A DNA stretch of 63,453 nucleotides, the filler included, from Octopus bimaculoides (lineage: Eukaryota): NCBI RefSeq assembly GCF_001194135.2. It is 6 parts of 5 records of this genome, joined end to end, with 100 filler letters (N's around TTAATTAATTAA, not from the genome) between each part and the next. Parts side by side here need not be neighbours in the genome. Positions count along the whole stretch, not along the records: positions 1 to 22,517 come from NC_068985.1; 5 more parts are not named here. The stretch is one strand, 5' to 3'. The notes under the pieces were generated by a model. The model did no database searches. It had not been told where the DNA came from and saw only the letters and a program-made list of their open reading frames with translations. The position numbers and the translations under genes are program-made. Shown here in pieces: positions 2,394-21,880 of the stretch (its first letter is position 1; each line of letters starts with the position of its first letter).

Positions 2394-2934
2394 GTTATTT
2401 TGCAAATTGCGTATTACTTATGGGAGGTGCACCAGACATTAAACACAATACCCCAGAAAAACATCGCAACTGGTATATACGTAAAATGTAAGTCACGCCC
2501 TTATTTGAATGGGCGTGACTTATAGTTTACTTATATACCAGTTGCGCTGAATAAAGATCGCTCGTCGTAATATCCATCACCAATCTGTCTTAAAATTTGA
2601 TGTTCATGTCGGGAACGCTTTTAATTATCAGGGTTAATAGGTTACATAGCTTTTTGACATCATACATTTATTTTAATTCTCTTGTCTTTTCCATATTAAT
2701 CTCCAAGAATTCAGAAATTTCAGATCGGATGAATATTATACTACTGTAGATTCCCATCTTACTTAACTAGAGTTATTCAGTCAACTACAGCAGTAATTAA
2801 TCCGCAAGACGTAATCACTATTATCCTCCACTGTAACCAGACAGGAATTTAAAGCGATATAAATTCATGTAATGATACGAGGAAGACAAAAGAATACGGC
2901 CACATGCGATTGACATTTCATAGATCTGGTTTCT

Positions 2935-3161
2935 TATTTCTCTATTGACCACAAGGGGCTACACACAGAAGGGACAAACAAGGACAGACAAAAGGATTAA
3001 GTCAATTACATCAACCGCAGTGCGTAACTGGTACTTAATTTATCGACCCGAAAGGATGAAAGGTAAAGTCGACCTCGGCGGTATTTGAACTCAGACCGTA
3101 ACGGCAGACGGAACACCGATAAGCGTTTTGCCCGGCGTGCTAACGTTTCTGCCAGCTCGCC
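2935..3161 (-). mobile_element. tRNA-derived SINE, B-tail monomer, full length with 23-bp TSD
   Basis: B-box-like gagttcaaat on minus; gacatttcatagat(c/t)tggtttct is duplicated at 2912-2934 and 3162-3184. Confidence 0.9.
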
Positions 3162-3460: not shown

Positions 3461-4397
3461 GTAATTACATACATACACACCTGCAAATACAAAGTGTGCG
3501 TGTGTCTGTGCGTGTCTGTGAGTGAGTGCACAAATGGAAGAAGTGCGCACTCAGCGCATTTCTTTAAAACAATTTGATTCGGCACTATGCAGCCTAAAGA
3601 TTTGCATGTTTCTTACCGAAACGTAGCTCGTTCAGGTTCAAATTACGGAATAGCAAATTGCAGAAGTTCAAGGTGCCCACTGTATTTCCCAGACGGCTAC
3701 TAGAGAATGGGCTGTTATTGGTCAAGACGGATCACATGGTGTTGTTAGGAAATGCATTAGAAAGGAGCACTGCCTAAAACCCTTGGTTGTACAGAAAGCT
3801 GATTGCAGCCTGATATCTGACGAACTTTTGAAGGAAATTATAATCCGTGAGGAGCAAAGCCCACGAGAGAGAGAGAGAGAGAGCAAGTGAGGGAGAGAGA
3901 AAGAGAGGGGGGGTGAAAGAGGGGGAGAGTGAAAGAGAGGGAGAGTGAAAGAGAGGTAGAGGGAAAGAGAGGGAGAGGGAAAGAGAGGGAGAGAGAGAGA
4001 GGGTAGNNNNNNNNNNNNNNNNNNNNNNNNNNNNNNNNNNNNNNNNNNNNNNNNNNNNNNNNNNNNNNNNNNNNNNNNNNNNNNNNNNNNNNNNNNNNNN
4101 NNNNNNNNNNNNNNNNNNNNNNNNNNNNNNNNNNNNNNNNNNNNNNNNNNNNNNNNNNNNNNNNNNNNNNNNNNNNNNNNNNNNNNNNNNNNNNNNNNNN
4201 NNNNNNNNNNNNNNNNNNNNNNNNNNNNNNNNNNNNNNNNNNNNNNNNNNNNNNNNNNNNNNNNNNNNNNNNNNNNNNNNNNNNNNNNNNNNNNNNNNNN
4301 NNNNNNNNNNNNNNNNNNNNNNNNNNNNNNNNNNNNNNNNNNNNNNNNNNNNNNNNNNNNNNNNNNNNNNNNNNNNNNNNNNNNNNNNNNNNNNNNN

Positions 4398-4769
4398 TCG
4401 ACCCCAGTGCATAACTGCTGCTTAATTTATCGACCCCGAAAGAATGAAAGGCAAAGTCCACCTCGGCGGAATGTGGACCCAGAACGTAAAGACAGACGAA
4501 ATACCGCTAAGCATTTCGCCCGAAGTGCTAACGTTTCTTATTTCTTTATTGCCCACAAAGGGCTAAACATAGAGGGGACAAACAAGGACAGACAAAGGGA
4601 TTAAGTCAATTATATCGACCCCAGTGCATAACTGCTGCTTAATTTATCGACCCCGAAAAATGAACGGTAGAGTCAACCTCGGCGGAATTTGAACTCAGAA
4701 CGTAACGGCAGACGAAATATCGCTAAACATTTCGCCCGGAGCGCTAACGTTTCTGCCAGCTCGCCGCCT
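4398..4769 (-). mobile_element. SINE A/B dimer, tail end hidden by gap
   Basis: Two tandem copies of the core tcgaccccgaaa-gatgaaaggcaaagtc-acctcggcggaat, joined at gtttct|tatttc (4538/4539). Confidence 0.9.
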
Positions 4770-6660: not shown

Positions 6661-7180
6661 NNNNNNNNNNNNNNNNNNNNNNNNNNNNNNNNNNNNNNNN
6701 NNNNNNNNNNNNNNNNNNNNNNNNNNNNNNNNNNNNNNNNNNNNNNNNNNNNNNNNNNNNNNNNNNNNNNNNNNNNNNNNNNNNNNNNNNNNNNNNNNNN
6801 NNNNNNNNNNNNNNNNNNNNNNNNNNNNNNNNNNNNNNNNNNNNNNNNNNNNNNNNNNNNNNNNNNNNNNNNNNNNNNNNNNNNNNNNNNNNNNNNNNNN
6901 NNNNNNNNNNNNNNNNNNNNNNNNNNNNNNNNNNNNNNNNNNNNNNNNNNNNNNNNNNNNNNNNNNNNNNNNNNNNNNNNNNNNNNNNNNNNNNNNNNNN
7001 NNNNNNNNNNNNNNNNNNNNNNNNNNNNNNNNNNNNNNNNNNNNNNNNNNNNNNNNNNNNNNNNNNNNNNNNNNNNNNNNNNNNNNNNNNNNNNNNNNNN
7101 NNNNNNNNNNNNNNNNNNNNNNNNNNNNNNNNNNNNNNNNNNNNNNNNNNNNNNNNNNNNNNNNNNNNNNNNNNNNNNNN

Positions 7181-7392
7181 GTGTCAGTGTTTGTCCCCAC
7201 CAACACGCTTGACAACCGATGGTAGTGTGTTTACATCCCGTAATTAGCGGTTCGGCAAAAGAGACCGATAGAATAAGTACTAGGCTTCCAAAGAATGAGT
7301 CTCCTGGTCGATTTGCTCGACTAAAGGTGGTGCTCCAGCATGGCCGCAGTCAAATGACTGAAACAAGTAAAAGAATAAAAGAATAAAAGAAT
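7181..7392 (+). mobile_element. SINE group C body and tail ending in (AAAAGAAT)n
   Basis: Homologous to 14205-14418, 56045-56258 and the minus-strand copies. Confidence 0.85.
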
Positions 7393-9689
7393 ATATATGC
7401 ACATGTATGCGCGTCTGTGTGACTATGTGAGCGCGCGTGTGTAAAACCTGAACAGTTAGTGTATCAATAAAGTTGTCAATTCACCATTCCAGTCTGTCTG
7501 GTGTTAAAGTTGTGTACATAATATTATAATGAAGAAACCAATAACTACATTCTCTCCTATATTTCTGAATTCTGTTAACGTTCTTAGATACGAAGTCTAA
7601 TTTTAGCCTAAGCTGATTTCTCTAACAATACAAACTATGAGGAAATGGCTTGAAAAGTGCTTGAAAAATAGTCGGCTCCTTTCTCGGAATACTTCTAACT
7701 GTGCTACGCAGGTGCAGGGAAATACAGAAATCAAATGACTACTCACTAAAATAGCATTAAATTTCACACTATTAATTCTTGAGTCTATGCAAACTTTTAT
7801 GTAAACAAGCCAGCGCTTCAAATGGGTCACTAAGGCGTTAATGGCAGCAGAGTAGAACGATGACTGTGTAACCATGAGCAAAATGAAAGACAACATTCTT
7901 GTATAAATAAAACATCTAGCGAGATTACTCTAGCCTCCACTCCCCGCTTCGTCACTTCTTCTTCCTCTAATTCCCTCTCTTTCTTTCTTTCTATCTCCCC
8001 TTCTTATGACTATCAATACTTCTTCATCGAATCATTTTCATTCATTATATTTGAATCGTTTCACCACTTCGATTTTTCCTTTATGGTTTCCTTGATAATC
8101 TCCATCACTTCCCCTCCTCCTCCAAGATTCTTATCCCCACTTCACCCTTTCTCTCTCTCTCTCTCTCTTTCTTTCTCTCTCTCTCTCTCTCTCTCTCACT
8201 CTCTCTCTCTCTGTCCTTCTTTCTCCCGTTCTCACTTTCCGTTATATCTCTACATGTCTAATATTGACTCTGCTCTCTTTCCATTTGTTCTCACTCCCGA
8301 CATTTATATCTTCCTATAAGCGTTCCAATGAATCTGTCTTCATCACGCAGAAGCAGATACATGCATAGGAAGATGCACACACATACGCACGCACACGCAC
8401 ACACACATACGCACACATACGTACACACACACATACCCTCACATACTCGTGCATATACACAAACCTGAATACATACAAGCTTACACATACATTTATATGT
8501 ATTCATGTACGTACGATGTAAATCATATACGCGTGGGTGTGTGCGCGCGTCTGTATATCAATACATAGAGAAAGTGAGACGTGTATATATATATATATAT
8601 ATGCATGTGCGTATCTCTCTCTCTCTCTCTCTCTCTCTAAATATATTTGTGTGCGCGTAAGCATATACATATACATATGTACTTCTTTCTCTCTCGCCAC
8701 ATATCTCTCTGGTTATTTAACCCTCTCTCTGAGTTTCTTTCATTCTTTTCTGCTTCCCACGTTCGATATTAAATTGCTCTTTGAACTACGCCATGCATGG
8801 CGTTTATTATTCATAGTTTCTGGCTTTCTTCCAACAGAGGTCATAACTTTGAATCAGCGATAAAAGCAATTTGTTCGAAGCAAAAGTGTGTACACTATAT
8901 CAATCTTTCTAATATAGTACATTCTGAGAACCTCACATAAAGACATCTTTAAACTATCAAACTTTACAAGATTCGATTAGTTTTGATGCCATGATATTTT
9001 TCTTTTGTAATATTTTTTTTTCATAATCATGATATGTGGCTATCAAATATGTAGCATGTATTTGACTGATTAATCGATAAAATTCAAACAAAATTCTCTT
9101 ACTAAGAGATACGGAATGATAGATTCTGATCTTAATCTTTTAAACAATAGGCTTTCTCTATTTAATTACATATTTATTAAATAATAAATATTGTATGTTT
9201 GTACTTAACATACACACCCACCCACTGATACACATTTATATATACATATACACATGCAAAAACATATATATATGTATTATATATANNNNNNNNNNNNNNN
9301 NNNNNNNNNNNNNNNNNNNNNNNNNNNNNNNNNNNNNNNNNNNNNNNNNNNNNNNNNATATATATATATATATATATATACGTGTGTGTGTGTGTGTGTG
9401 TATTTAGAATGGGCAGTTTCTATATCTAACAGTATTCGCTTCTTTTTTCTGAAATATGACTGCTCAGACGTTGTGAATGAAATATTTTTTATTTGTTTAT
9501 GAAATTACTTCGATGTAGTTTAAACAAGAGAAAACAATTACTTATGTACGGCTATTATATATATGTAGTCACTCAATCGAGTTACAGAGGGAGTATATAA
9601 TATTAGATGACGTATTTACTGTAAAGAATCATACACGATGCTTGTGAGGCTGAGGTCATTTAATTAAATTTAGTGCTTCGTTTCGTGAG

Positions 9690-9900: not shown

Positions 9901-10389
9901 TAGTCATTGTATGTATGTAAGAAGAATACCAACTTATATGTTACCGAAATAATTTCAGTATCAGGTTAAGTCTAACTTGCTAATCGACTTCAGAGGTGTA
10001 GTATATATTTTAATCAGCCACGATAGTTTTCCAGCAAATTATTTTACATGTTCAAGAGAAGAAATAAGAATGACGGTCGGGTAAGATTTGAAATTCAGCT
10101 TTTAAGTTTTCAAATTCGCGCTTTCATAAATAACAACGTAGTTTCTCTATTATAAAACTTGTCTGAATGTGTGTGTGAGTATGGGCATGTGTCCGGAAGT
10201 GGGTGTATATGTTCGTACGTATATGACTCAATCTATCTTTGTATCTTTCTCCCCCTCTCGTTCTTCCTTCTGTTGTTCTTCACCTCTCCCCTTCACTACT
10301 ATATATCTCTCTTCCTTCCAGTTTGTTGCTTCATAGCGTTTAGTATACACATATTTTTTCACGTCTGGCCGTATAGCCTTTCTTGTGTA

Positions 10390-10740
10390 TCTTCACTGTT
10401 TCTTTTTCTTGTCTTGTTTTCTGTCCGCCACTACATTCCACCACGGTACAAATTTGATTTGTGGTCCGTGGGAAGAGCCATTCTAACAATGTGTCCTGTC
10501 CTGACTCTTCGAAACGCTTAGTTCTAGAATGGTGGCAGCTGATGAAGGAAATGTTCTCTAGGTGGCCTGTGTGTTTTCTGTACTCTGTGTATCATTTTGT
10601 CCAAGTTTTTTTTTTGCAACGTCCTGTACCCAGATATGCATCTATATATACATGTAGATGTAGGTATGTACATACATGTACGTATATATACATGTACTCA
10701 TATGTTGTTTGTATTATATATATATACATACATATATACG
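10390..10740 (+). mobile_element. Interspersed repeat carrying a permuted hammerhead motif, copy 1
   Basis: Homologous to the minus-strand copies at about 37180-37542 and 46030-46400 (shared gacgtcctgtaccc, ttttgtcca, ttcgaaacgc, ctgatgaa). Confidence 0.75.
10478..10550 (+). ncRNA. Candidate non-circularly permuted hammerhead ribozyme, GUC cleavage triplet at 10493-10495
   Basis: GUGU-C-CUGUC ... UCUU-C-GAAACGC ... GGCAG-CUGAUGA-AGGA; stems I, II and III pair in register. Confidence 0.65.
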
Positions 10741-10954
10741 GCAGATAAGTAAAAGGAGAGGATATTTGCCGTATAAATTTTAAACCATGTTCTAACCCTG
10801 CTCATATATGAAACTCTGTTGTGAGATTGCCAGGCAATAACCGACATAAGCGTATGAATAATTGGGTAGAATACCGGCAGTATATTGAATATGCACTAAG
10901 GTACGTATGCATGCATCTATATATCTATATTCTTTTATCTTTTATTTGTTTAAG

Positions 10955-11130
10955 ACATTTTACTGCAGCCATGCTGGAGCACCACCCTTAATCGAACAGA
11001 TCGGGCACAGGACTTATTCATTGTAAGCCTAGTACTTATTCCAGCGGGTTCTTTTGGTGAGTTACAGGGACGTAAACACACCAACATCGGTTGTGAAGTG
11101 ATGGTGGGGTACAAACACAGACCCACAAAC
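10955..11130 (-). mobile_element. SINE group C
   Basis: gcagccatgctggagcacc...aagcctagtacttatt...gtaaacacaccaacatcggttgt. Confidence 0.8.
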
Positions 11131-11256
11131 ATATACATGCATACACAGACACACACACACACACGCACACACACACACACACGCACGCACATATATATAT
11201 ATATGTATGTATATTACATATACATGTGTTTATATTTGTATATGAACGTAGATTCG

Positions 11257-11310
<54 letters not shown>

Positions 11311-11604
11311 TGTATGTATTCATGTATGCATGCATTTATGTATCTATGTTTTCGTGCATAGGTGTGTGTATGTATTTATGTGTTATGTAATCACCCTGAG
11401 TAATTACTTTCTTAATCTGACGCCTCTATGAAAGAGGAGGAAATAGTAAAGTTGCTGTTTCTCGTATGAGTCATTATAAATTAATGATAAGTTGATTTAT
11501 TGCAATACCTCGCAGAGAAATATATTAAACACTTTCGCAATTTATGTCTTATTACTTTATTCTTTCTCTCCTTCCCCGATACGCATGTATGAATGTGTGA
11601 ACAC

Positions 11605-11666
<62 letters not shown>

Positions 11667-12399
11667 NNNNNNNNNNNNNNNNNNNNNNNNNNNNNNNNNN
11701 NNNNNNNNNNNNNNNNNNNNNNNNNNNNNNNNNNNNNNNNNNNNNNNNNNNNNNNNNNNNNNNNNNNNNNNNNNNNNNNNNNNNNNNNNNNNNNNNNNNN
11801 NNNNNNNNNNNNNNNNNNNNNNNNNNNNNNNNNNNNNNNNNNNNNNNNNNNNNNNNNNNNNNNNNNNNNNNNNNNNNNNNNNNNNNNNNNNNNNNNNNNN
11901 NNNNNNNNNNNNNNNNNNNNNNNNNNNNNNNNNNNNNNNNNNNNNNNNNNNNNNNNNNNNNNNNNNNNNNNNNNNNNNNNNNNNNNNNNNNNNNNNNNNN
12001 NNNNNNNNNNNNNNNNNNNNNNNNNNNNNNNNNNNNNNNNNNNNNNNNNNNNNNNNNNNNNNNNNNNNNNNNNNNNNNNNNNNNNNNNNNNNNNNNNNNN
12101 NNNNNNNNNNNNNNNNNNNNNNNNNNNNNNNNNNNNNNNNNNNNNNNNNNNNNNNNNNNNNNNNNNNNNNNNNNNNNNNNNNNNNNNNNNNNNNNNNNNN
12201 NNNNNNNNNNNNNNNNNNNNNNNNNNNNNNNNNNNNNNNNNNNNNNNNNNNNNNNNNNNNNNNNNNNNNNNNNNNNNNNNNNNNNNNNNNNNNNNNNNNN
12301 NNNNNNNNNNNNNNNNNNNNNNNNNNNNNNNNNNNNNNATATATATACATATATATACCATATGGAATTACGCTTACCATATAAAATTATCAACCAAAC

Positions 12400-13700
12400 A
12401 GTTTTGCTAGGATAACTTGTTATTAGGGTAATTATCTTTAAAACTCCTAGACTTATTTTTATTACGTATAAAGGGATATAAAGAACGGTTACCTCCCTTA
12501 CGCTGCAAAGTTACAATTTTTCGATTTAGTGTAGTTATTCGAACTAAAATTTAAATTGCTATTACAGTTATGACGTGTTTTCATGTCCCGATTAATAGAG
12601 GTAGAATTAATGTCAATAGGGTTAATATAAGTAATCTTTTTTCTTTATAGCCTGCTTTAAGTAAGTCAGATTTAAAAATTCGGCTTTATCGTTAAATATA
12701 TCAACATAAGCAGATAATCTAGAATGTCTAAGGGAAATATTTCTAACTAAATTCCGTATAATAGCCTTTGAGTGATTACTGAAAAAGCTAATATATATTA
12801 AATTAATTGATGGTTTATGGTATGGGAAATACGAATCATTGCATAAGTTAAGGGTAATATCCAAAAAGTTGGCTTTAGTTATATCATCATTGAAATCAAT
12901 GCTTAAGCCCATGTTTCGGAAAAATTTACCCAACCTATTTTTTACCCTTTGAAAGTTTTGGTTAGAAACATTTTGAAGGCTAGAAACAATCAACACGATA
13001 TAAACTTACATTGATGTTTGGGAATTGGTCAGCCATCGCATAAAGAATATATATATCGACCAAATCAGCCGATTGTGCTGAGTCAGAACTTGCCATCGTG
13101 ATATCAAAAGCGTATCTTTACGGACCCATAGTTTGTTTTCAAATCCAATGATTGATTTTCTTGCAGCTAACACCACATTAATTTCATCCCGGTTGAGATC
13201 TGCTTTGTTGTGTACAAACCAAATGCTTTCTTGAGTACAATTGAGTTAATGGAGGAATATTAACTAGAAATACTGAACTGTATAAACTTAGTGCACTTCT
13301 TGTTATTAATAGAATTAAACCAGTCGACCACTTGGTTTATTAGACCATAAATTAAGCTTTAATTTTTTAAATAAAGAAGGAATATATTTATCTAGAACAG
13401 TTTTGCTAAGTACACCGATATCAGAGCTAGAAGTACAAATAAGTCGTAAGTTTGGGTTATTAAAAATTTGGTTTGTGGTCTTTTAAAATGGAATGGAATA
13501 TTCTATCTAGATCCTTCCCGTATGACAAAGGTAAATCTTTTTGTTCGCTTCTTAAAGAAGAACAATTTCTCATCCTCTTCTCTAACAATACTCTTATAAA
13601 CACGTTTAAAGAACCCGTTTACCGCTGGAAACATTGGCAAAAACATACCTTTAGTTCCTATAGGTAATTTCTATAATCTATAAAATTCGACCTTTAGCAG
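12400..13700 (-). pseudogene. Penelope-like element reverse transcriptase remnant with stops and frameshifts
   Basis: Motifs in order: NNPNLRLICTSSSDIG, VVDWFNSINNK, ARKSI, FDITMASSDSAQSADLVDIYIL, LYRVDCF (decayed YRDD), FLDITLNL..YFPYHKP, SNH. Confidence 0.85.
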
Positions 13701-14204
13701 TCTTCCTGCATTTCATTTCCACTACATATATCTCTTTCCACGCTTTAAAGTTTTATTCCCATTCACATGTCCCACTATGTTTCTCCACTCTTAATTTTCT
13801 GTTAATTTCTTTTTATTCTCCGCCTTCTCTTTCTCTAAATTACCTTTGACGTTAAATCTATTAACGTTTTTTTATAAAAATAACTTGCCAATGTTTCCCT
13901 TCATCATATACTCGGTAATCACATTTGGTTAAAATGGGTTATTGATTTGTTTTGTTTCTCTTTTTTTCTTCCTGACGAGATGACTGCATTGTTCTACATA
14001 ATTTTATTCTTTCCGGAATAATATCGATGCTTTCTTCGAAATCTATGTCGGAAGTATAAAGATTTGAATAACATCTGCGTTTAACTCCATTTCTTAATCT
14101 ATATATTTATCAGTCTCTCTCTCTCTCTCTCTCTNNNNNNNNNNATATATGTATGTATGTATGTATACATTTATACATGTATATATTTATATATGTATAT
14201 ATTT

Positions 14205-14418
14205 GTGCATGTGTGTTTCTGTTTGTCCCCCGCCACCGCTTACCAACAGACGCTGGTGTGTTTATGACCCCGTAACCAAGTGGTTCGGCCAATGAGACCG
14301 ATAGAATAAGTACTAGGCTTAAAAAGAATCATGCCTGGGGTCGATTTCTTCTAGTAGAAACACTTTTAATGCGGTGCTCCAGCATGGCCTCATTCAAATT
14401 ACTGAAACAAGTAAAAGT
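14205..14418 (+). mobile_element. SINE group C
   Basis: gagaccgatagaataagtactaggctt...gcggtgctccagcatggcc...tgaaacaagtaaaag. Confidence 0.8.
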
Positions 14419-14913
14419 CTAACAGAAGATATGTTCGAATATTTTCTCGTAGAAGAGACAGAATCCTTCAAAACTTCGATTTAAAAAATAACAGCCATAA
14501 ATGTAACATGTATAAGATGAGAAATGTATTTTAAATATTTTCACCAGTAAAAAACATGAGATTGTTTGAGCAGGGAGTAATGCATATGCGCACAAAATAG
14601 CAGAAGATACTGGAACCAAGCCGTAATTATATCATTGATTGAATAAATTGCTGTTCTTAAAACTTGTCTTATTTTTGCTTACAAAACCGAGCGCAATTTT
14701 CGGCCCACACAATATTTCATATATATAGTCAATACTGTTGTTTACCAACTAATACTTCCACTGTCCACACTAGTTTGTTTATTTCATTAACGCATATACA
14801 ACACGGACTTCATGTTCTTTACATATTTCCTTGTCGATGAATCTGGTACGTAATGTTTAATAGAGTCGTTCACCAAAATTATTGGCAGTCATATCAGATT
14901 CATTGACAAGTAT

Positions 14914-15530
14914 ACTTTTCTATTCTAGGCACAAGACCCGAAATTTTTGTAGAGGGGGCCAGTGGATTAGATCGACCCCAGTGCGCAACTGGTACTTAAT
15001 TTATCGACCCCGAAACGATGAAAGAGAAAGTCGACCTCGGCGGAATTTGAACTCAGAACGTAAAGATAGACGAAATGCCGTTCAGCATTTCGCCCGGCTT
15101 GCTAGCGTTTCTTATTTCTTTGTTGTCCACAAGGGGCTAAAGATAGAGAGGACAAACACGGACATACAAAGTGATTAAGTCGATTACATCGACCCCAGTG
15201 CGCAACTGGTACTTAATTTATCGACCCCGAAACGATGAAAGGCAAAGTCGACCTCAGCGGAATTTGAACTCAGAACATAAAGACAGACGAAATACCTATT
15301 TCTTTACTGCCCACAAGGGGCTACACACAGAGGGGACAAACAAGGACAGACAAACGGATTAAAACGATTATATCGACCCCAGTGCATAACTGGTACTTAA
15401 TTTATCGACCCCGAAAGGATGAAAGGCAAAGTCGACCTCGGCGGAATTTGAACTCAGAACGCAGTGGCAGACGAAATACCGCTAAGCATTTCGCCCGGCG
15501 TGCTAACCGTTTCTGCCAGCTCGTCACGTT
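14914..15530 (-). mobile_element. SINE A/B trimer
   Basis: Three cores with junctions at 15112/15113 and about 15296; outer TSD attcattgRYaagtat at 14898-14913 and 15881-15896. Confidence 0.9.
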
Positions 15531-15540
15531 ATTCATTGGT

Positions 15541-15880
15541 CGTGGCACTCCGTCAGTTACAACGACGAGGGTTCCAGTTTATCCGATCAACGGAACAGAC
15601 TGCAAGTGGCTGAGCACTCCAGAGATATGTGTTCCCTTAACGTATTTGTCGGGGAGATTCAGCGTGACACAGTGTGCAAAGGCTGGCCCTTCAAAATACA
15701 GATACAATAGAAACAGTGAGAGGAGGTTGTGGCGAAAGAGGACAGCAAGGTTCACCCCCTGCCGGAGCCTCGTGGAACTTCAGGTATTTTCGCTCAATAA
15801 AAACTCACAACGCCCGGTCTGGCAATCGAAACGGCGATCCTACGACCGCGAGTCCGCTGCCCTAAGCACTGGGACGCCAC
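15541..15880 (-). mobile_element. SINE group H, full length, inserted in the trimer's TSD
   Basis: tRNA-like head on minus (gcttagggcagcggactcgcggtcgtagg...ttcgattgcc); 10-bp TSD attcattggt at 15531-15540 and 15881-15890. Confidence 0.85.
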
Positions 15881-16991
15881 ATTCATTGGTAAGTATTACA
15901 TCAATAATAGTAGCAACTGAGTTAAAAATATATAATTTTGCAAAGGGTATTGTACTGAAAGATACGATTAAATAATCTACAATAATCTATTCAAAACATG
16001 TCATAAACGAATTTCCGCTGGTTTTAATATGCACTCCGTCATGCTATCTGCAATTTATGGCTACTTCGTTCATTGTAACTATAATTCATTACTGTTTAGC
16101 TATATAGATATACACAAAAAATTAGTTTCTGCTCAGAAAACTAAAACAAAAGCTTTAATCTTCTTGTCAGTTCATATCTTACGAATATTTTATGCTGCTC
16201 CTCAGGATAAAATGTTGCTGAAGTCAGAATTGCAATATAAGTTAAAATTTATCGGATAAAAATAATATTGTTGAGTACATTCACTTGTAGAAGTAGTTGT
16301 AGTAATTTATGCGAGGTTTTAACTAATATGCTCCGGAAATACCTTCCTAACTGCAAACCCAATATTTCTTGCAAACGTAATGTGAATAATTCATTATCCC
16401 GCGTGAATTATAATCCTTTATGTTATTTATCTCAGTGGTAAAGTTATTGCTCCTCGATTAATTATTTATAAGGACGAATCTCTGTATTAACTGTCTACTA
16501 TTCATAGTTATTGAAATTTATTTGTTTAAAAGTGAGGGTGACCACGGTGTATCAATATTCCTACGAGATTAACACTCGACTCTGTTCAATTTATGTTTGT
16601 ATATAATCATGACCTTTACTCAGCTAACATACATGAGAACATTACGAATATCAAACTGTATGCCTTTCCATTCATTTAAAAATAATTAACGCACTCATAG
16701 GTGTTACGGTGGGTATACCTTTTCTTTTCATCTGTTATTCAAATGATATTTTGTGATTCTACGAGCATGGAGAGTAGATTGATCTCAGTATAATATACTG
16801 TTAGCTTGTACATTGTCAGAATCTCGAAGGACCAATGTAACTTGAAGAGAACCTGAGTATCTAGGAAGTTCTAAAAATTATCTACATTTGATTTCTAAAA
16901 ACACTTTACAGAGCCAATTATCAACTCCCAAGTATTATAACTTTAACTATGAAATCTAGCACGCGACGCATGGCAAATTTTCGCAAATATT

Positions 16992-17197
16992 TATTTCTTT
17001 TTTGCTCGCAGGTGGCTAAACATAGAGGGGGAAAAGAAGGACAGATAAAGGGAATAAGTCCATTACATTAACCTCTGTGCATAACTGGTACTTATTTAAT
17101 CGACCCCGAAAAGATGAAAGGCAAAGTCAACCTCGGCGGAATTTAAACGAAGAACGTATCGGCAGACGAAATACCGCTCAGCATTTCTCCCAAATAC
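16992..17197 (-). mobile_element. 5'-truncated B-tail SINE with 14-bp TSD
   Basis: ttttcgcaaatatt at 16978-16991 and 17198-17211. Confidence 0.85.
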
Positions 17198-18354: not shown

Positions 18355-18445
18355 AGTAGATTCACAAGTATCTAAAATGTATCTAAGTAGATTCACAAGT
18401 ATCTAAAATGTATCTAAGTAGATTCACAAGTATCTAAAAGTATCC
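18355..18445. repeat. 31-bp tandem repeat x3
   Basis: Unit agtagattcacaagtatctaaaatgtatcta. Confidence 0.9.
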
Positions 18446-19158
18446 ATCGCAAATTCCTTTTACATAATAATAATATATTACCTACAATGTTGTATTTACT
18501 GTTGTAGCCCAGCATCCGCATCAACGGCTATTGCACATTCCTACTTTAATGGCAGTTTGCATTATATTTTCTAATGACGTCTCCCTAATTTAAGACAAAA
18601 TATTAAGGTTTCTTTGTGTTTGGGAGATATTTGGAATGAGTCGAAGTGTTATGGAGAATGGGTAGTAATATACATAAGGTCATATGAAGGGTAGCAGTAA
18701 TATCTATGTTTGGCACAAATATTTAATGCTAGTAATTTTGATAACCAGTACCTTTTTTGCAGCTTAATGTGTTAATAAAAAGGAGACGCCAATGTTGAGA
18801 GAGACAATAAAAATGGGATGTAAGTGGCTGATTCATGGATCACTCTAATGTCCCTTGTTAGTTAAGAGAATCCTAAATATTTATCGGAAGGTCAACCGAA
18901 AGAGAAGAGGAAAACAAAAGTTGAGTTGCAAGAATGAGTAATTGCTCGTTGGCAATGATATCAAGTTTGGGTGTCATCTGAGGTTGTTTGATGTTTATGA
19001 GTGTTTTATCAATTTGAGGTCTGAATTATTCATTGGAATGTAAAAAAAAAATCACTGCGATAAACATATGACCAATAAGTGATCTTTCGAGCGTCCGTTA
19101 AAGTTTAGGGCGTTTTTAGGAAACTAAATATTTATTTTCTCTTGTACGTTTACCATAT

Positions 19159-19372
19159 ATTCTTTTCTACTCTAGGAACAGGGTGCGAAGTTTTGGGGGA
19201 GGGGGCCGGTCGATGAGATCAACCCCACTACGAAACTGGTTCTCAATTTATCGGCCCCAAAAGGATGAAAAGTAGAATCGACCTCGACGGAATTTGAACT
19301 CAAAACATAAAGACAGACGAAACACTGCTAAGCATTTCGCCCGGCTCGCTAACGTTTCTGCCAGCTCGCCGC
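19159..19372 (-). mobile_element. SINE A monomer
   Basis: Full head-core-tail alignment to the other A copies. Confidence 0.85.
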
Positions 19373-20093: not shown

Positions 20094-20534
20094 GGCGGCG
20101 AGTTGGCAGAAACGTTAGCATGCCGGGCAAAATACTTAGCAAGTATTTCGTCTATCTTCACGTTCTGAGTTCAAATTCCGCCGAGGTCGACTTTGCCTTT
20201 CATCTTTTCGGGGTCGATTAAATAAGTACCAGTTACCCACTGGTGTCAATGTAATCGACGTAAACCCTTTCTTCGTCTGTCCTTGTTTGTCCCCTCTATG
20301 TTTAGCCCCTTGTGGGCAATAAAGAAATAAGAAACGTTAGCACTTCGGGCGAAATGCTTAGCGGTATTTCGTCTGTCTTTACGTTCTGAGTTCAAATTCT
20401 GTCGTGGTCGACTTTGCCTTTCATCCTTTCGGGGTCGATAAATTAAGTGCCAGTGGCGTACTGGGGTCGATCTAATCGACTGGTTCCCTCCACCAAAATT
20501 TCGGGTCTTATGCCTAGAGTAAAAATAATAATAG
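20094..20534 (+). mobile_element. SINE B-A dimer with a single 11-bp TSD
   Basis: tgtaggaaaaa at 20083-20093 and 20535-20545; junction gaaata|agaaacgttagc at 20329/20330. Confidence 0.9.
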
Positions 20535-21409
20535 TGTAGGAAAAACAAAGTCCAGCCAACTGCAGTGATGTTCATAATTGCTCCAAAATTTGCAGATCGG
20601 AACATTTACCGAGAAGGATATATTTCAATTATATTTCAATAATAGTGAATATGTGTATTCGCTGAATGTATGAGAGCTTGTTTTAAGGATGAGATGTAAA
20701 ATTGATGTAATGAGTGTCCATTCATGAAATTCGATGGAACACCCTACTTACAGCCGAAGCCGCTAGAAAAAAAAATGAAAATTTTAGCTGCAGGCTCTCT
20801 AGTCTCGGTTACGTCGCTCAACTCAGCAGTTTTCAATGGCTTGACTACCAGTATATTTTGTAAACTTGTAGAGAGTAATCATACTTGAATAAAATCCAAT
20901 GAGATGAAAAGCGAACTCGGAATTCCGAGAAAAAAATTTAGATTTTTTTATCTAAATTTCAAATCAGCGTTACAATCATTATTGTCATTTTTCTGTGTGC
21001 TGTAGATAACAATTACAATCTAAACTATGTCTGCAAAGCTAAATTTTGAGAAAGAAAAATAACGAAATTAATGAAAAAGTAAAAATCAATTTCAATAGGA
21101 AAATTTTCTAGGTGAATGACACTTTCAAAATTGAACAAAAAATCGGGGAGGTGTAACAACTAATTTAGGGTGAAAAGTAAAACAAGATTTAATATTGGTT
21201 CAGTAATATAGATTGACACAGTTTGAAATTCGACATTTCAGAAAAATTTACAAATATTTTAAATCACAAGTCAGTACCAATTAAAGAAAAGATGTACAAC
21301 TCTGTACATTTCTAGACAGTGATGTCATGTATAAATAAATATTTATTCATCAGTAATTAACATATATGCATACATACAGAGAAACACAGAAAATCCCAAA
21401 CATGCATAT

Positions 21410-21880
<471 letters not shown>

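Follow-up and report, generated by a model that had tools for sequence, protein, structure and literature searches.

The window analysed here is a stretch of 63,453 nucleotides (filler included) from Octopus bimaculoides (RefSeq assembly GCF_001194135.2), in which positions 1-22,517, hereafter called the piece, come from NC_068985.1. Six N gaps (1609-2079, 4007-4397, 6661-7180, 9286-9357, 11667-12338 and 14135-14144) mark the piece as draft scaffold. A SINE-like repeat, abundant and about 200 nt long, is found at 2928-3134, 4532-4738, 14889-15496, 16985-17191, 19136-19342 and 20271-20525 (the last one inverted), with a 184-nt tandem dimer at 15113-15480, and it gives 9-15 overlapping matches in L003, a 76-kb O. 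bimaculoides locus (CM046612.1). A reading frame that runs through one of the SINE-like copies (15382-15975) is 88% identical, over 21% of the length, to an O. bimaculoides 'uncharacterized protein', the annotation of which is probably repeat-derived. A second interspersed repeat, consisting of a body followed by a long CA/TA tail, occurs at 7183-7380, 10928-11394 and 14176-14417 (inverted), and has as many as 10 overlapping matches in L003; a distance of 190 nt separates one of its copies from the repeat to its left, which carries the candidate discussed below. Simple and tandem sequence is present as well, in the form of 5.7 units of TAGGGT at 1481-1514 (an internal run of (TTAGGG)n, the telomere repeat of the vertebrate type, in a shifted register), 8.6 tandem copies of a purine-rich 16-nt unit at 3865-4001, a 31-nt tandem repeat of 2.9 copies with 98% identity at 18355-18444 (AGTAGATTCACAAGTATCTAAAATGTATCTA), and, at 21406-21880, about 475 nt of compound (TA)n/(TG)n microsatellite.

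Within this setting, all conserved core nucleotides of a hammerhead ribozyme are present on the plus strand at 10491-10549, as can be read directly from the sequence. They are distributed over three blocks and two linkers:

10491 to 10495, plus strand: first half of the site (S) block, with GUGU at 10491-94 (positions 16.4-16.1) as the stem III 5' strand, followed by C17 at 10495
10496 to 10500, plus strand: CUGUC, the 5' strand of stem I (1.1-1.5), pairing with GGCAG at 10534-38 in 5 bp, including one G-U
10501 to 10505, plus strand: CUGAC, the 5-nt linker from stem I to stem II
10506 to 10517, plus strand: the GAAA (G) block, with UCUU (stem II 3' strand), an extra C at 10510, G12-A13-A14-A15.1 at 10511-14 and CGC (stem III 3' strand)
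10518 to 10533, plus strand: the 16-nt linker from the GAAA block to the CUGAUGA block, holding the palindrome UUCUAGAA
10534 to 10549, plus strand: the CUGAUGA (C) block, with GGCAG (stem I 3' strand), C3-A9 at 10539-45 and AGGA (stem II 5' strand)

The core (C3 U4 G5 A6 N7 G8 A9, G12 A13 A14, A15.1-U16.1 and H17) is complete in the window copy, with all 13 positions canonical, and the predicted cleavage position is 3' of C10495, in a GUC triplet, which is of the preferred type. Stem III consists of GUGU/ACGC (4 bp, one G-U), while stem II can be drawn in two registers: either AGGA pairs with UCUU, with the extra C ahead of G12, or A10546 is extra after A9 and GGA (10547-49) pairs with UUC (10508-10). 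Given this one extra base (ahead of G12 or after A9), each block is uninterrupted and the blocks follow one another in S-G-C order. The first-pass annotation of this DNA, which had proposed a pseudoknotted hammerhead here, had the letters and coordinates of its parts (GUGU, C17, CUGUC, UCUU-C-GAAA-CGC and GGCAG-CUGAUGA-AGGA) exact to the base.

The strand order that it had read as a-c-b is that of the type-SGC non-circular permutation, comprising the HRIMA-1 motif and variants, which was validated by Eckert, Friedrich, Weinberg and Weinberg (Nucleic Acids Res 2023, PMC10085705), and its remark that non-circularly permuted hammerheads had been reported elsewhere is correct. The block-order topology is already known, namely as type SGC. 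The S-G-C order of the octopus site is not a circular permutation of S-C-G, the unknotted three-way junction, and a canonical hammerhead (type I, II or III) was looked for separately: all ten CUGANGA sites in the piece were examined and none qualifies, and downstream of 10545 there is no GAAA after a stem II hairpin. With Rfam 15, no hammerhead was found at gathering score in the whole piece, or at E up to 10 in 10200-10900, where the search returned miRNA-family noise only, in TA/CA simple sequence. On the minus strand at 12622-13176 lie decayed frames with RT-like motifs (..YRVD.., ..FLDITL..Y.KP..SNH..), truncated by the N gap at 11667-12338, which we take to resemble the RT of Penelope-like or related retroelements; they gave no Pfam match and no relative in the protein collection. 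Penelope-like elements carry hammerhead motifs, as noted in a passage of PMC8557442 that cites Cervera and de la Pena (2014, 2020), and the motif was considered as part of such an element. This was rejected, the RT-like frames being on the opposite strand, 2 kb off and beyond another repeat and an N gap, and no sequence is shared between them and the motif.

A second copy of part of the site was reached through the SINE-derived frame, from which the O. bimaculoides protein match leads to the locus of that protein, L003. The protein search with this frame gave two matches, one of them leading to L003; a further match by the protein route (P0002) led to a 543-nt contig only, and no match was obtained in the protein search with the frame across the motif or in the exact-product look-ups of three reading frames of the window. 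An alignment to L003 delimits the following feature:

10506 to 10738, no strand assigned: a copy of an interspersed repeat of the octopus, about 235 nt long

This stretch, which takes in the GAAA and CUGAUGA blocks with the linker between them, aligns to L003 22838-23088 (CM046612.1) with 83% identity (E 7e-74; 65-100% by segment), and since the flanks of the two copies are not collinear, the copy in L003 is a paralogue. On the left, the repeat borders on TG-rich simple sequence, of which there is about 160 nt in L003 and a short run (UGUGUCCUGUCCUG) followed by unique sequence in the window, and on the right it ends in TA-rich simple sequence. The TA/CA stretch at 10632-10750 is 81% identical to the L003 copy and hence belongs firmly to the repeat unit, as opposed to being a microsatellite that runs freely. 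The claim that the site belongs to a repeat family thus stands for 10506 onward, by virtue of this paralogue, but the site block falls outside the conserved repeat and blastn at two sensitivities found no second copy inside 1-22517. A 20-nt match at 13461-80 was considered as such a copy and dismissed, its extension not being significant (6% of shuffles score equally high). Likewise, a two-copy profile search of the piece and L003 together (98 kb) found no third copy of the repeat core, the TA-rich tail alone being matched elsewhere.

Along the site and its surroundings, identity to the paralogue is distributed as follows:

10440 to 10477, upstream: 45%
10478 to 10486, the 5' arm of a 9-bp helix (see below) minus its first base: 2/9
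S block: 6/10
S-G linker: 0/5 (S block and linker together 6/15)
G block: 11/12 (92%), the sole change being G12 to A within a CpG
G-C linker: 14/16 (88%)
C block: 16/16
51 nt after the C block: 84%
TA-rich end: 81%

Homology is thus clear from about 10501-10506 onward, the interval that separates the site block from the GAAA block. A linker that differs at all five positions, directly beside sequence of 92-100% identity, points to a homology edge rather than to relaxed constraint, and we infer that the element does not include the S block, which would be flanking or tail sequence. In the paralogue, the first half of the site block reads GUGUG (i.e. G at position 17) and GAAA is replaced by AAAA (A at G12). 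Either A at G12, the general base, or G at position 17, which violates the NUH rule, abolishes hammerhead cleavage. Over the 13 core positions, the two copies are identical at 11, G12 and position 17 being the differences, which is no better than in the neighbouring repeat, and no compensatory pair changes are seen between them (n = 2 copies). The first-pass annotation had held that a core and stems no better conserved than the flanking repeat would refute a ribozyme, and by that measure the ribozyme reading fails, albeit from two copies only. The ribozyme interpretation is not supported by the available comparison of two copies.

The left flank of the paralogue nevertheless bears some resemblance to the site block. 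Between L003 22823-22837 and window 10491-10505 the purine/pyrimidine pattern agrees at 13 of 15 positions, seven of the nine differences are transitions, and the pattern required for pairing of the S block fits at the same offset except for the G at 17 (i.e. it fits as G-Y-G-U-N-Y-U-G-Y-Y); the stem I 5' strand reads UUGCU, with which pairing is still possible. This fit, together with the transitions, is the one hint that the element might include the S block as a portion that decays fast, although the pairing-compatible flank may also reflect a quickly decaying TG-rich edge or tail that is common to both copies.

If the former applied, the octopus repeat family would bear a genuine type-SGC hammerhead, intact in the window copy and decayed in the paralogue, with the S block within the element, and the ribozyme would cut plus-strand transcripts 3' of C10495, for example in the processing of element RNA. 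The cleavage site would then lie at the left edge of the repeat, where TG-rich insertion sites or tails would supply the 5' strand of stem III. Such a family ribozyme would fit the complete canonical core with its three drawable stems, the short stem I-II linker and the extra base after A9 (both as in validated SGC ribozymes), and the low chance of a match per window (see below); moreover, as the change of G12 to A in the paralogue lies within a CpG, the G is probably ancestral, and the paralogue retains the potential for stems I and III at the same offset, via C/U changes opposite G. Those pairing-preserving changes are, however, all one-sided and therefore uninformative, whereas the linker and S block differ at 9 of 15 positions beside 84-100% identity, as expected for a homology edge, and two core changes in the paralogue are lethal. 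As set out below, stem II is only marginally stable and a fourth helix is unsupported, and if the TG-rich side were a (CA)n tail, the element would be a minus-strand retroposon with the motif in antisense. Furthermore, RefSeq was searched with SGC descriptors by Eckert et al., who retained covarying families only (PMC10085705). Altogether, we regard a family ribozyme as very improbable on these sequences.

The predicted energies of the stems differ considerably. Stem I amounts to -4.1 kcal/mol and stem III to -1.5 kcal/mol, while stem II reaches only 0.0 kcal/mol with four A-U/G-U-rich pairs and a bulge, or +1.8 kcal/mol with three pairs, compared to -7.1 and -4.8 kcal/mol for stem II of SGC-1 and SGC-3, two validated ribozymes whose sequences were reassembled from the oligonucleotides given in PMC10085705. 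In these predictions stem II is marginal and constitutes the weak point of the candidate. Two further helices can be drawn:

10523 to 10528, plus strand: UCUAGA, the possible 5' strand of a fourth helix, pairing with UCUAGG at 10557-62 in 6 bp
10477 to 10485, plus strand: GCCAUUCUA, the 5' arm of a 9-bp helix, pairing with UAGAAUGGU at 10525-33

The first, the counterpart of the fourth helix in SGC ribozymes, has spacers of 5 and 7 nt between it and the C block; a helix of equal or greater length occurs in 77% of shuffles, and its C-G pair 10524/10561 is U/U in the paralogue. The 9-bp helix (-10.6 kcal/mol) dominates the nested fold and overlaps the fourth-helix strand, but it was discarded as a structural element, since its 5' arm lies in unique flank sequence that is absent from the paralogue, and an equally long helix is found in 5% of shuffles. 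The nested fold as a whole (MFE -20.5 kcal/mol, z +1.45) is no stabler than shuffles on either strand.

These energies also bear on a reading in which the window copy alone works, as an accident at a single locus that was co-opted in a plus-strand host transcript across 10478-10562. The core is indeed intact in the window copy only, and single sequences that satisfy a permuted descriptor can cleave in vitro, e.g. GCS-1 from Caballeronia peredens (PMC10085705). Stem II is nonetheless weak, and a competing 9-bp helix is formed with unique flank sequence. The surroundings are simple sequence and repeats, in which neither a gene nor a long conserved reading frame lies near the site; no protein family is matched there, and nothing points to transcription. 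Co-option of this kind is, in our view, highly improbable.

It could also be that the conserved stretch has a role other than that of a ribozyme, for example as a hairpin or small-RNA precursor, with the hammerhead letters being incidental. Conservation between the copies extends over 10506-10738, including a TA-rich part in which sub-threshold matches to miRNA families are found (mir-297, mir-466, mir-1277 and others in Rfam, at 10632-10750). These matches reach at most 43 bits, against gathering scores of 70-100, and they lie in TA/CA simple sequence; the fold energy is no better than that of shuffles on either strand, and any young interspersed repeat would show comparable conservation. There is thus very little probability that such a role explains the site.

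How readily the motif arises by chance was estimated with a descriptor consisting of CUGANGA, GAAA and U-H, a stem I of 5 bp, a stem II of 4 bp with 0-1 extra base, and a stem III of A-U plus 3 bp, in which G-U pairs, any block order and gaps of up to 60 nt were allowed. On both strands of 1-22517, this descriptor has 10491-10549 as its sole match. A match in any order was obtained in 165 of 30000 first-order Markov pseudo-windows (0.55%) and in 74 of 12000 block shuffles (0.62%), a match in S-G-C order in 0.07-0.09% of the null windows, and one in S-G-C order with equally short linkers in about 0.01%. Stems as stable as those of the candidate (sum -5.6 kcal/mol) were present in 4 of 250 chance matches (about 1.6%). 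For a single 20-kb window, an any-order match at the stability of the candidate is unusual (about 1e-4), and this low per-window chance, the canonical core with its GUC and the flank of the paralogue that fits the pairing pattern all count against a chance origin.

The picture changes at the scale of the genome. With a genome of a few Gb (that of the octopus being, we assume, about 2.7 Gb), roughly ten or more chance matches are still to be expected. Moreover, the null is too strict, because the G and C blocks are copied as part of a repeat. The S-block pattern that fits fixed G and C blocks, G-Y-G-U-H-Y-U-G-Y-Y, was counted in octopus strand sequence totalling 165 kb, where its frequency is about 5e-5 per position, and one copy of the repeat in 62 kb of L003 suggests, very roughly and with a wide Poisson range, 1e3-1e5 copies per genome. 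Combining the two, the number of copies that would complete the motif nearby by chance ranges from below one to a few tens.

Searches of other collections touch on the same question. The 23-base HRIMA-1 consensus pattern, in a metagenome scan, matched two long contigs (L001 3991-4045 and L002 7311-7374), neither of which was accepted as HRIMA-1: by eye their stems are unpaired, the L001 match resembles coding sequence, and both were judged to be chance matches, which illustrates that core-only patterns are readily matched in very large collections. The motif-block pattern gave no hits among metagenome contigs, where octopus DNA is not expected, and neither this pattern nor a 28-mer of the repeat gave any among viral and prokaryotic contigs, collections likewise not expected to hold octopus DNA.

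Following these results, the site is very probably a fortuitous composite, i.e. a chance look-alike and not a biological ribozyme. On this reading, the repeat of about 235 nt happens to carry CGAAAC and, 24 nt on, CUGAUGA, and the short sequences flanking these two can pair weakly as stem II. In the window copy, the TG/TC-rich simple sequence UGUGUCCUGUCCUG at the left edge of the repeat happens to supply GUGUC-CUGUC, which, being able to pair with ACGC and GGCAG, completes the hammerhead consensus in S-G-C order. The fold is presumably under no selection. A transcript of the window copy might still cleave slowly or detectably in vitro, because all core bases are present and GCS-1 shows that lone descriptor matches can cleave; we consider such an outcome rather unlikely, and it would not make the site a functional element.

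An abundant octopus repeat with a working type-SGC (doubly pseudoknotted) hammerhead would be the first of this topology to occur in an animal genome, and also the first borne by a genomic repeat, which we hold to be decidedly improbable. If true, it would move the non-circular hammerhead permutation from uncultured virus-like RNAs into an animal genome, tied to a mobile repeat, and it would provide thousands of natural variants for studying the folding of pseudoknotted hammerheads. As it stands, the locus is rather a cautionary case, in which a repeat with two thirds of a ribozyme consensus completes the motif accidentally where simple-sequence flanks fit. Given that such completion can happen in repeats, descriptor matches in repeat-rich genomes need a copy-to-copy comparison before they are believed.

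Repeats with canonical hammerheads are familiar from metazoans, in the form of Penelope-like elements, retrozymes and schistosome and newt satellite or SINE-like repeats. The hammerheads in these belong to the circular permutations of type I or III, are contained entirely in the repeat unit and are conserved across copies. The octopus site resembles these in that a hammerhead-type motif is tied to an interspersed repeat in an invertebrate genome. It differs in being non-circular, in having one block outside the conserved unit and in lying in a piece (1-22,517) without a canonical hammerhead.

[quoted passage not shown] Their setting is a different one. So far, SGC ribozymes are known from metatranscriptome and metagenome contigs only, 583 having been predicted and the natural SGC sequences tested being IMG/M metagenome or metatranscriptome contigs, and the published contigs are linked to hairpin-ribozyme, virus-like circular RNAs (PMC10085705). 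In the later literature, no paper was found that reports a type-SGC ribozyme in an animal genome. The octopus site belongs instead to a repeat on an animal chromosome, amid SINE-like repeats, microsatellites and scaffold gaps, and not to a small RNA of the virus-like or circular type. The structural details diverge as well: the stem I-II linker is 5 nt (7 nt in the alternative stem II register) against typically 3 nt in published SGC ribozymes (PMC10085705), a length that it approaches without matching it, and stem II has 3-4 weak pairs against 5 G-C-rich ones. The fourth helix, which in SGC ribozymes clamps the CUGAUGA block on either side and on which cleavage of SGC-3 depends (PMC10085705), has 7 bp at 0-1 nt from the C block in SGC-1 and SGC-3, as opposed to at most 6 bp with spacers of 5 and 7 nt in the octopus. 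Finally, covariation in the SGC stems is copious (PMC10085705), whereas the two copies show none at the octopus site, of which the S block is not conserved.

Closer in kind is GCS-1 of Caballeronia peredens (PMC10085705), which we infer to be the one RefSeq exception among the natural sequences tested by Eckert et al., all others being IMG/M accessions. Unlike the octopus site, which is known from sequence alone, GCS-1 has G-C-S order, is bacterial and intergenic, and was tested in vitro, where it cleaves partially, its biological relevance being called unclear by the authors (PMC10085705). Both are lone sequences that satisfy a permuted hammerhead descriptor without support from covariation, and GCS-1 is the best precedent for the probable nature of the octopus site.
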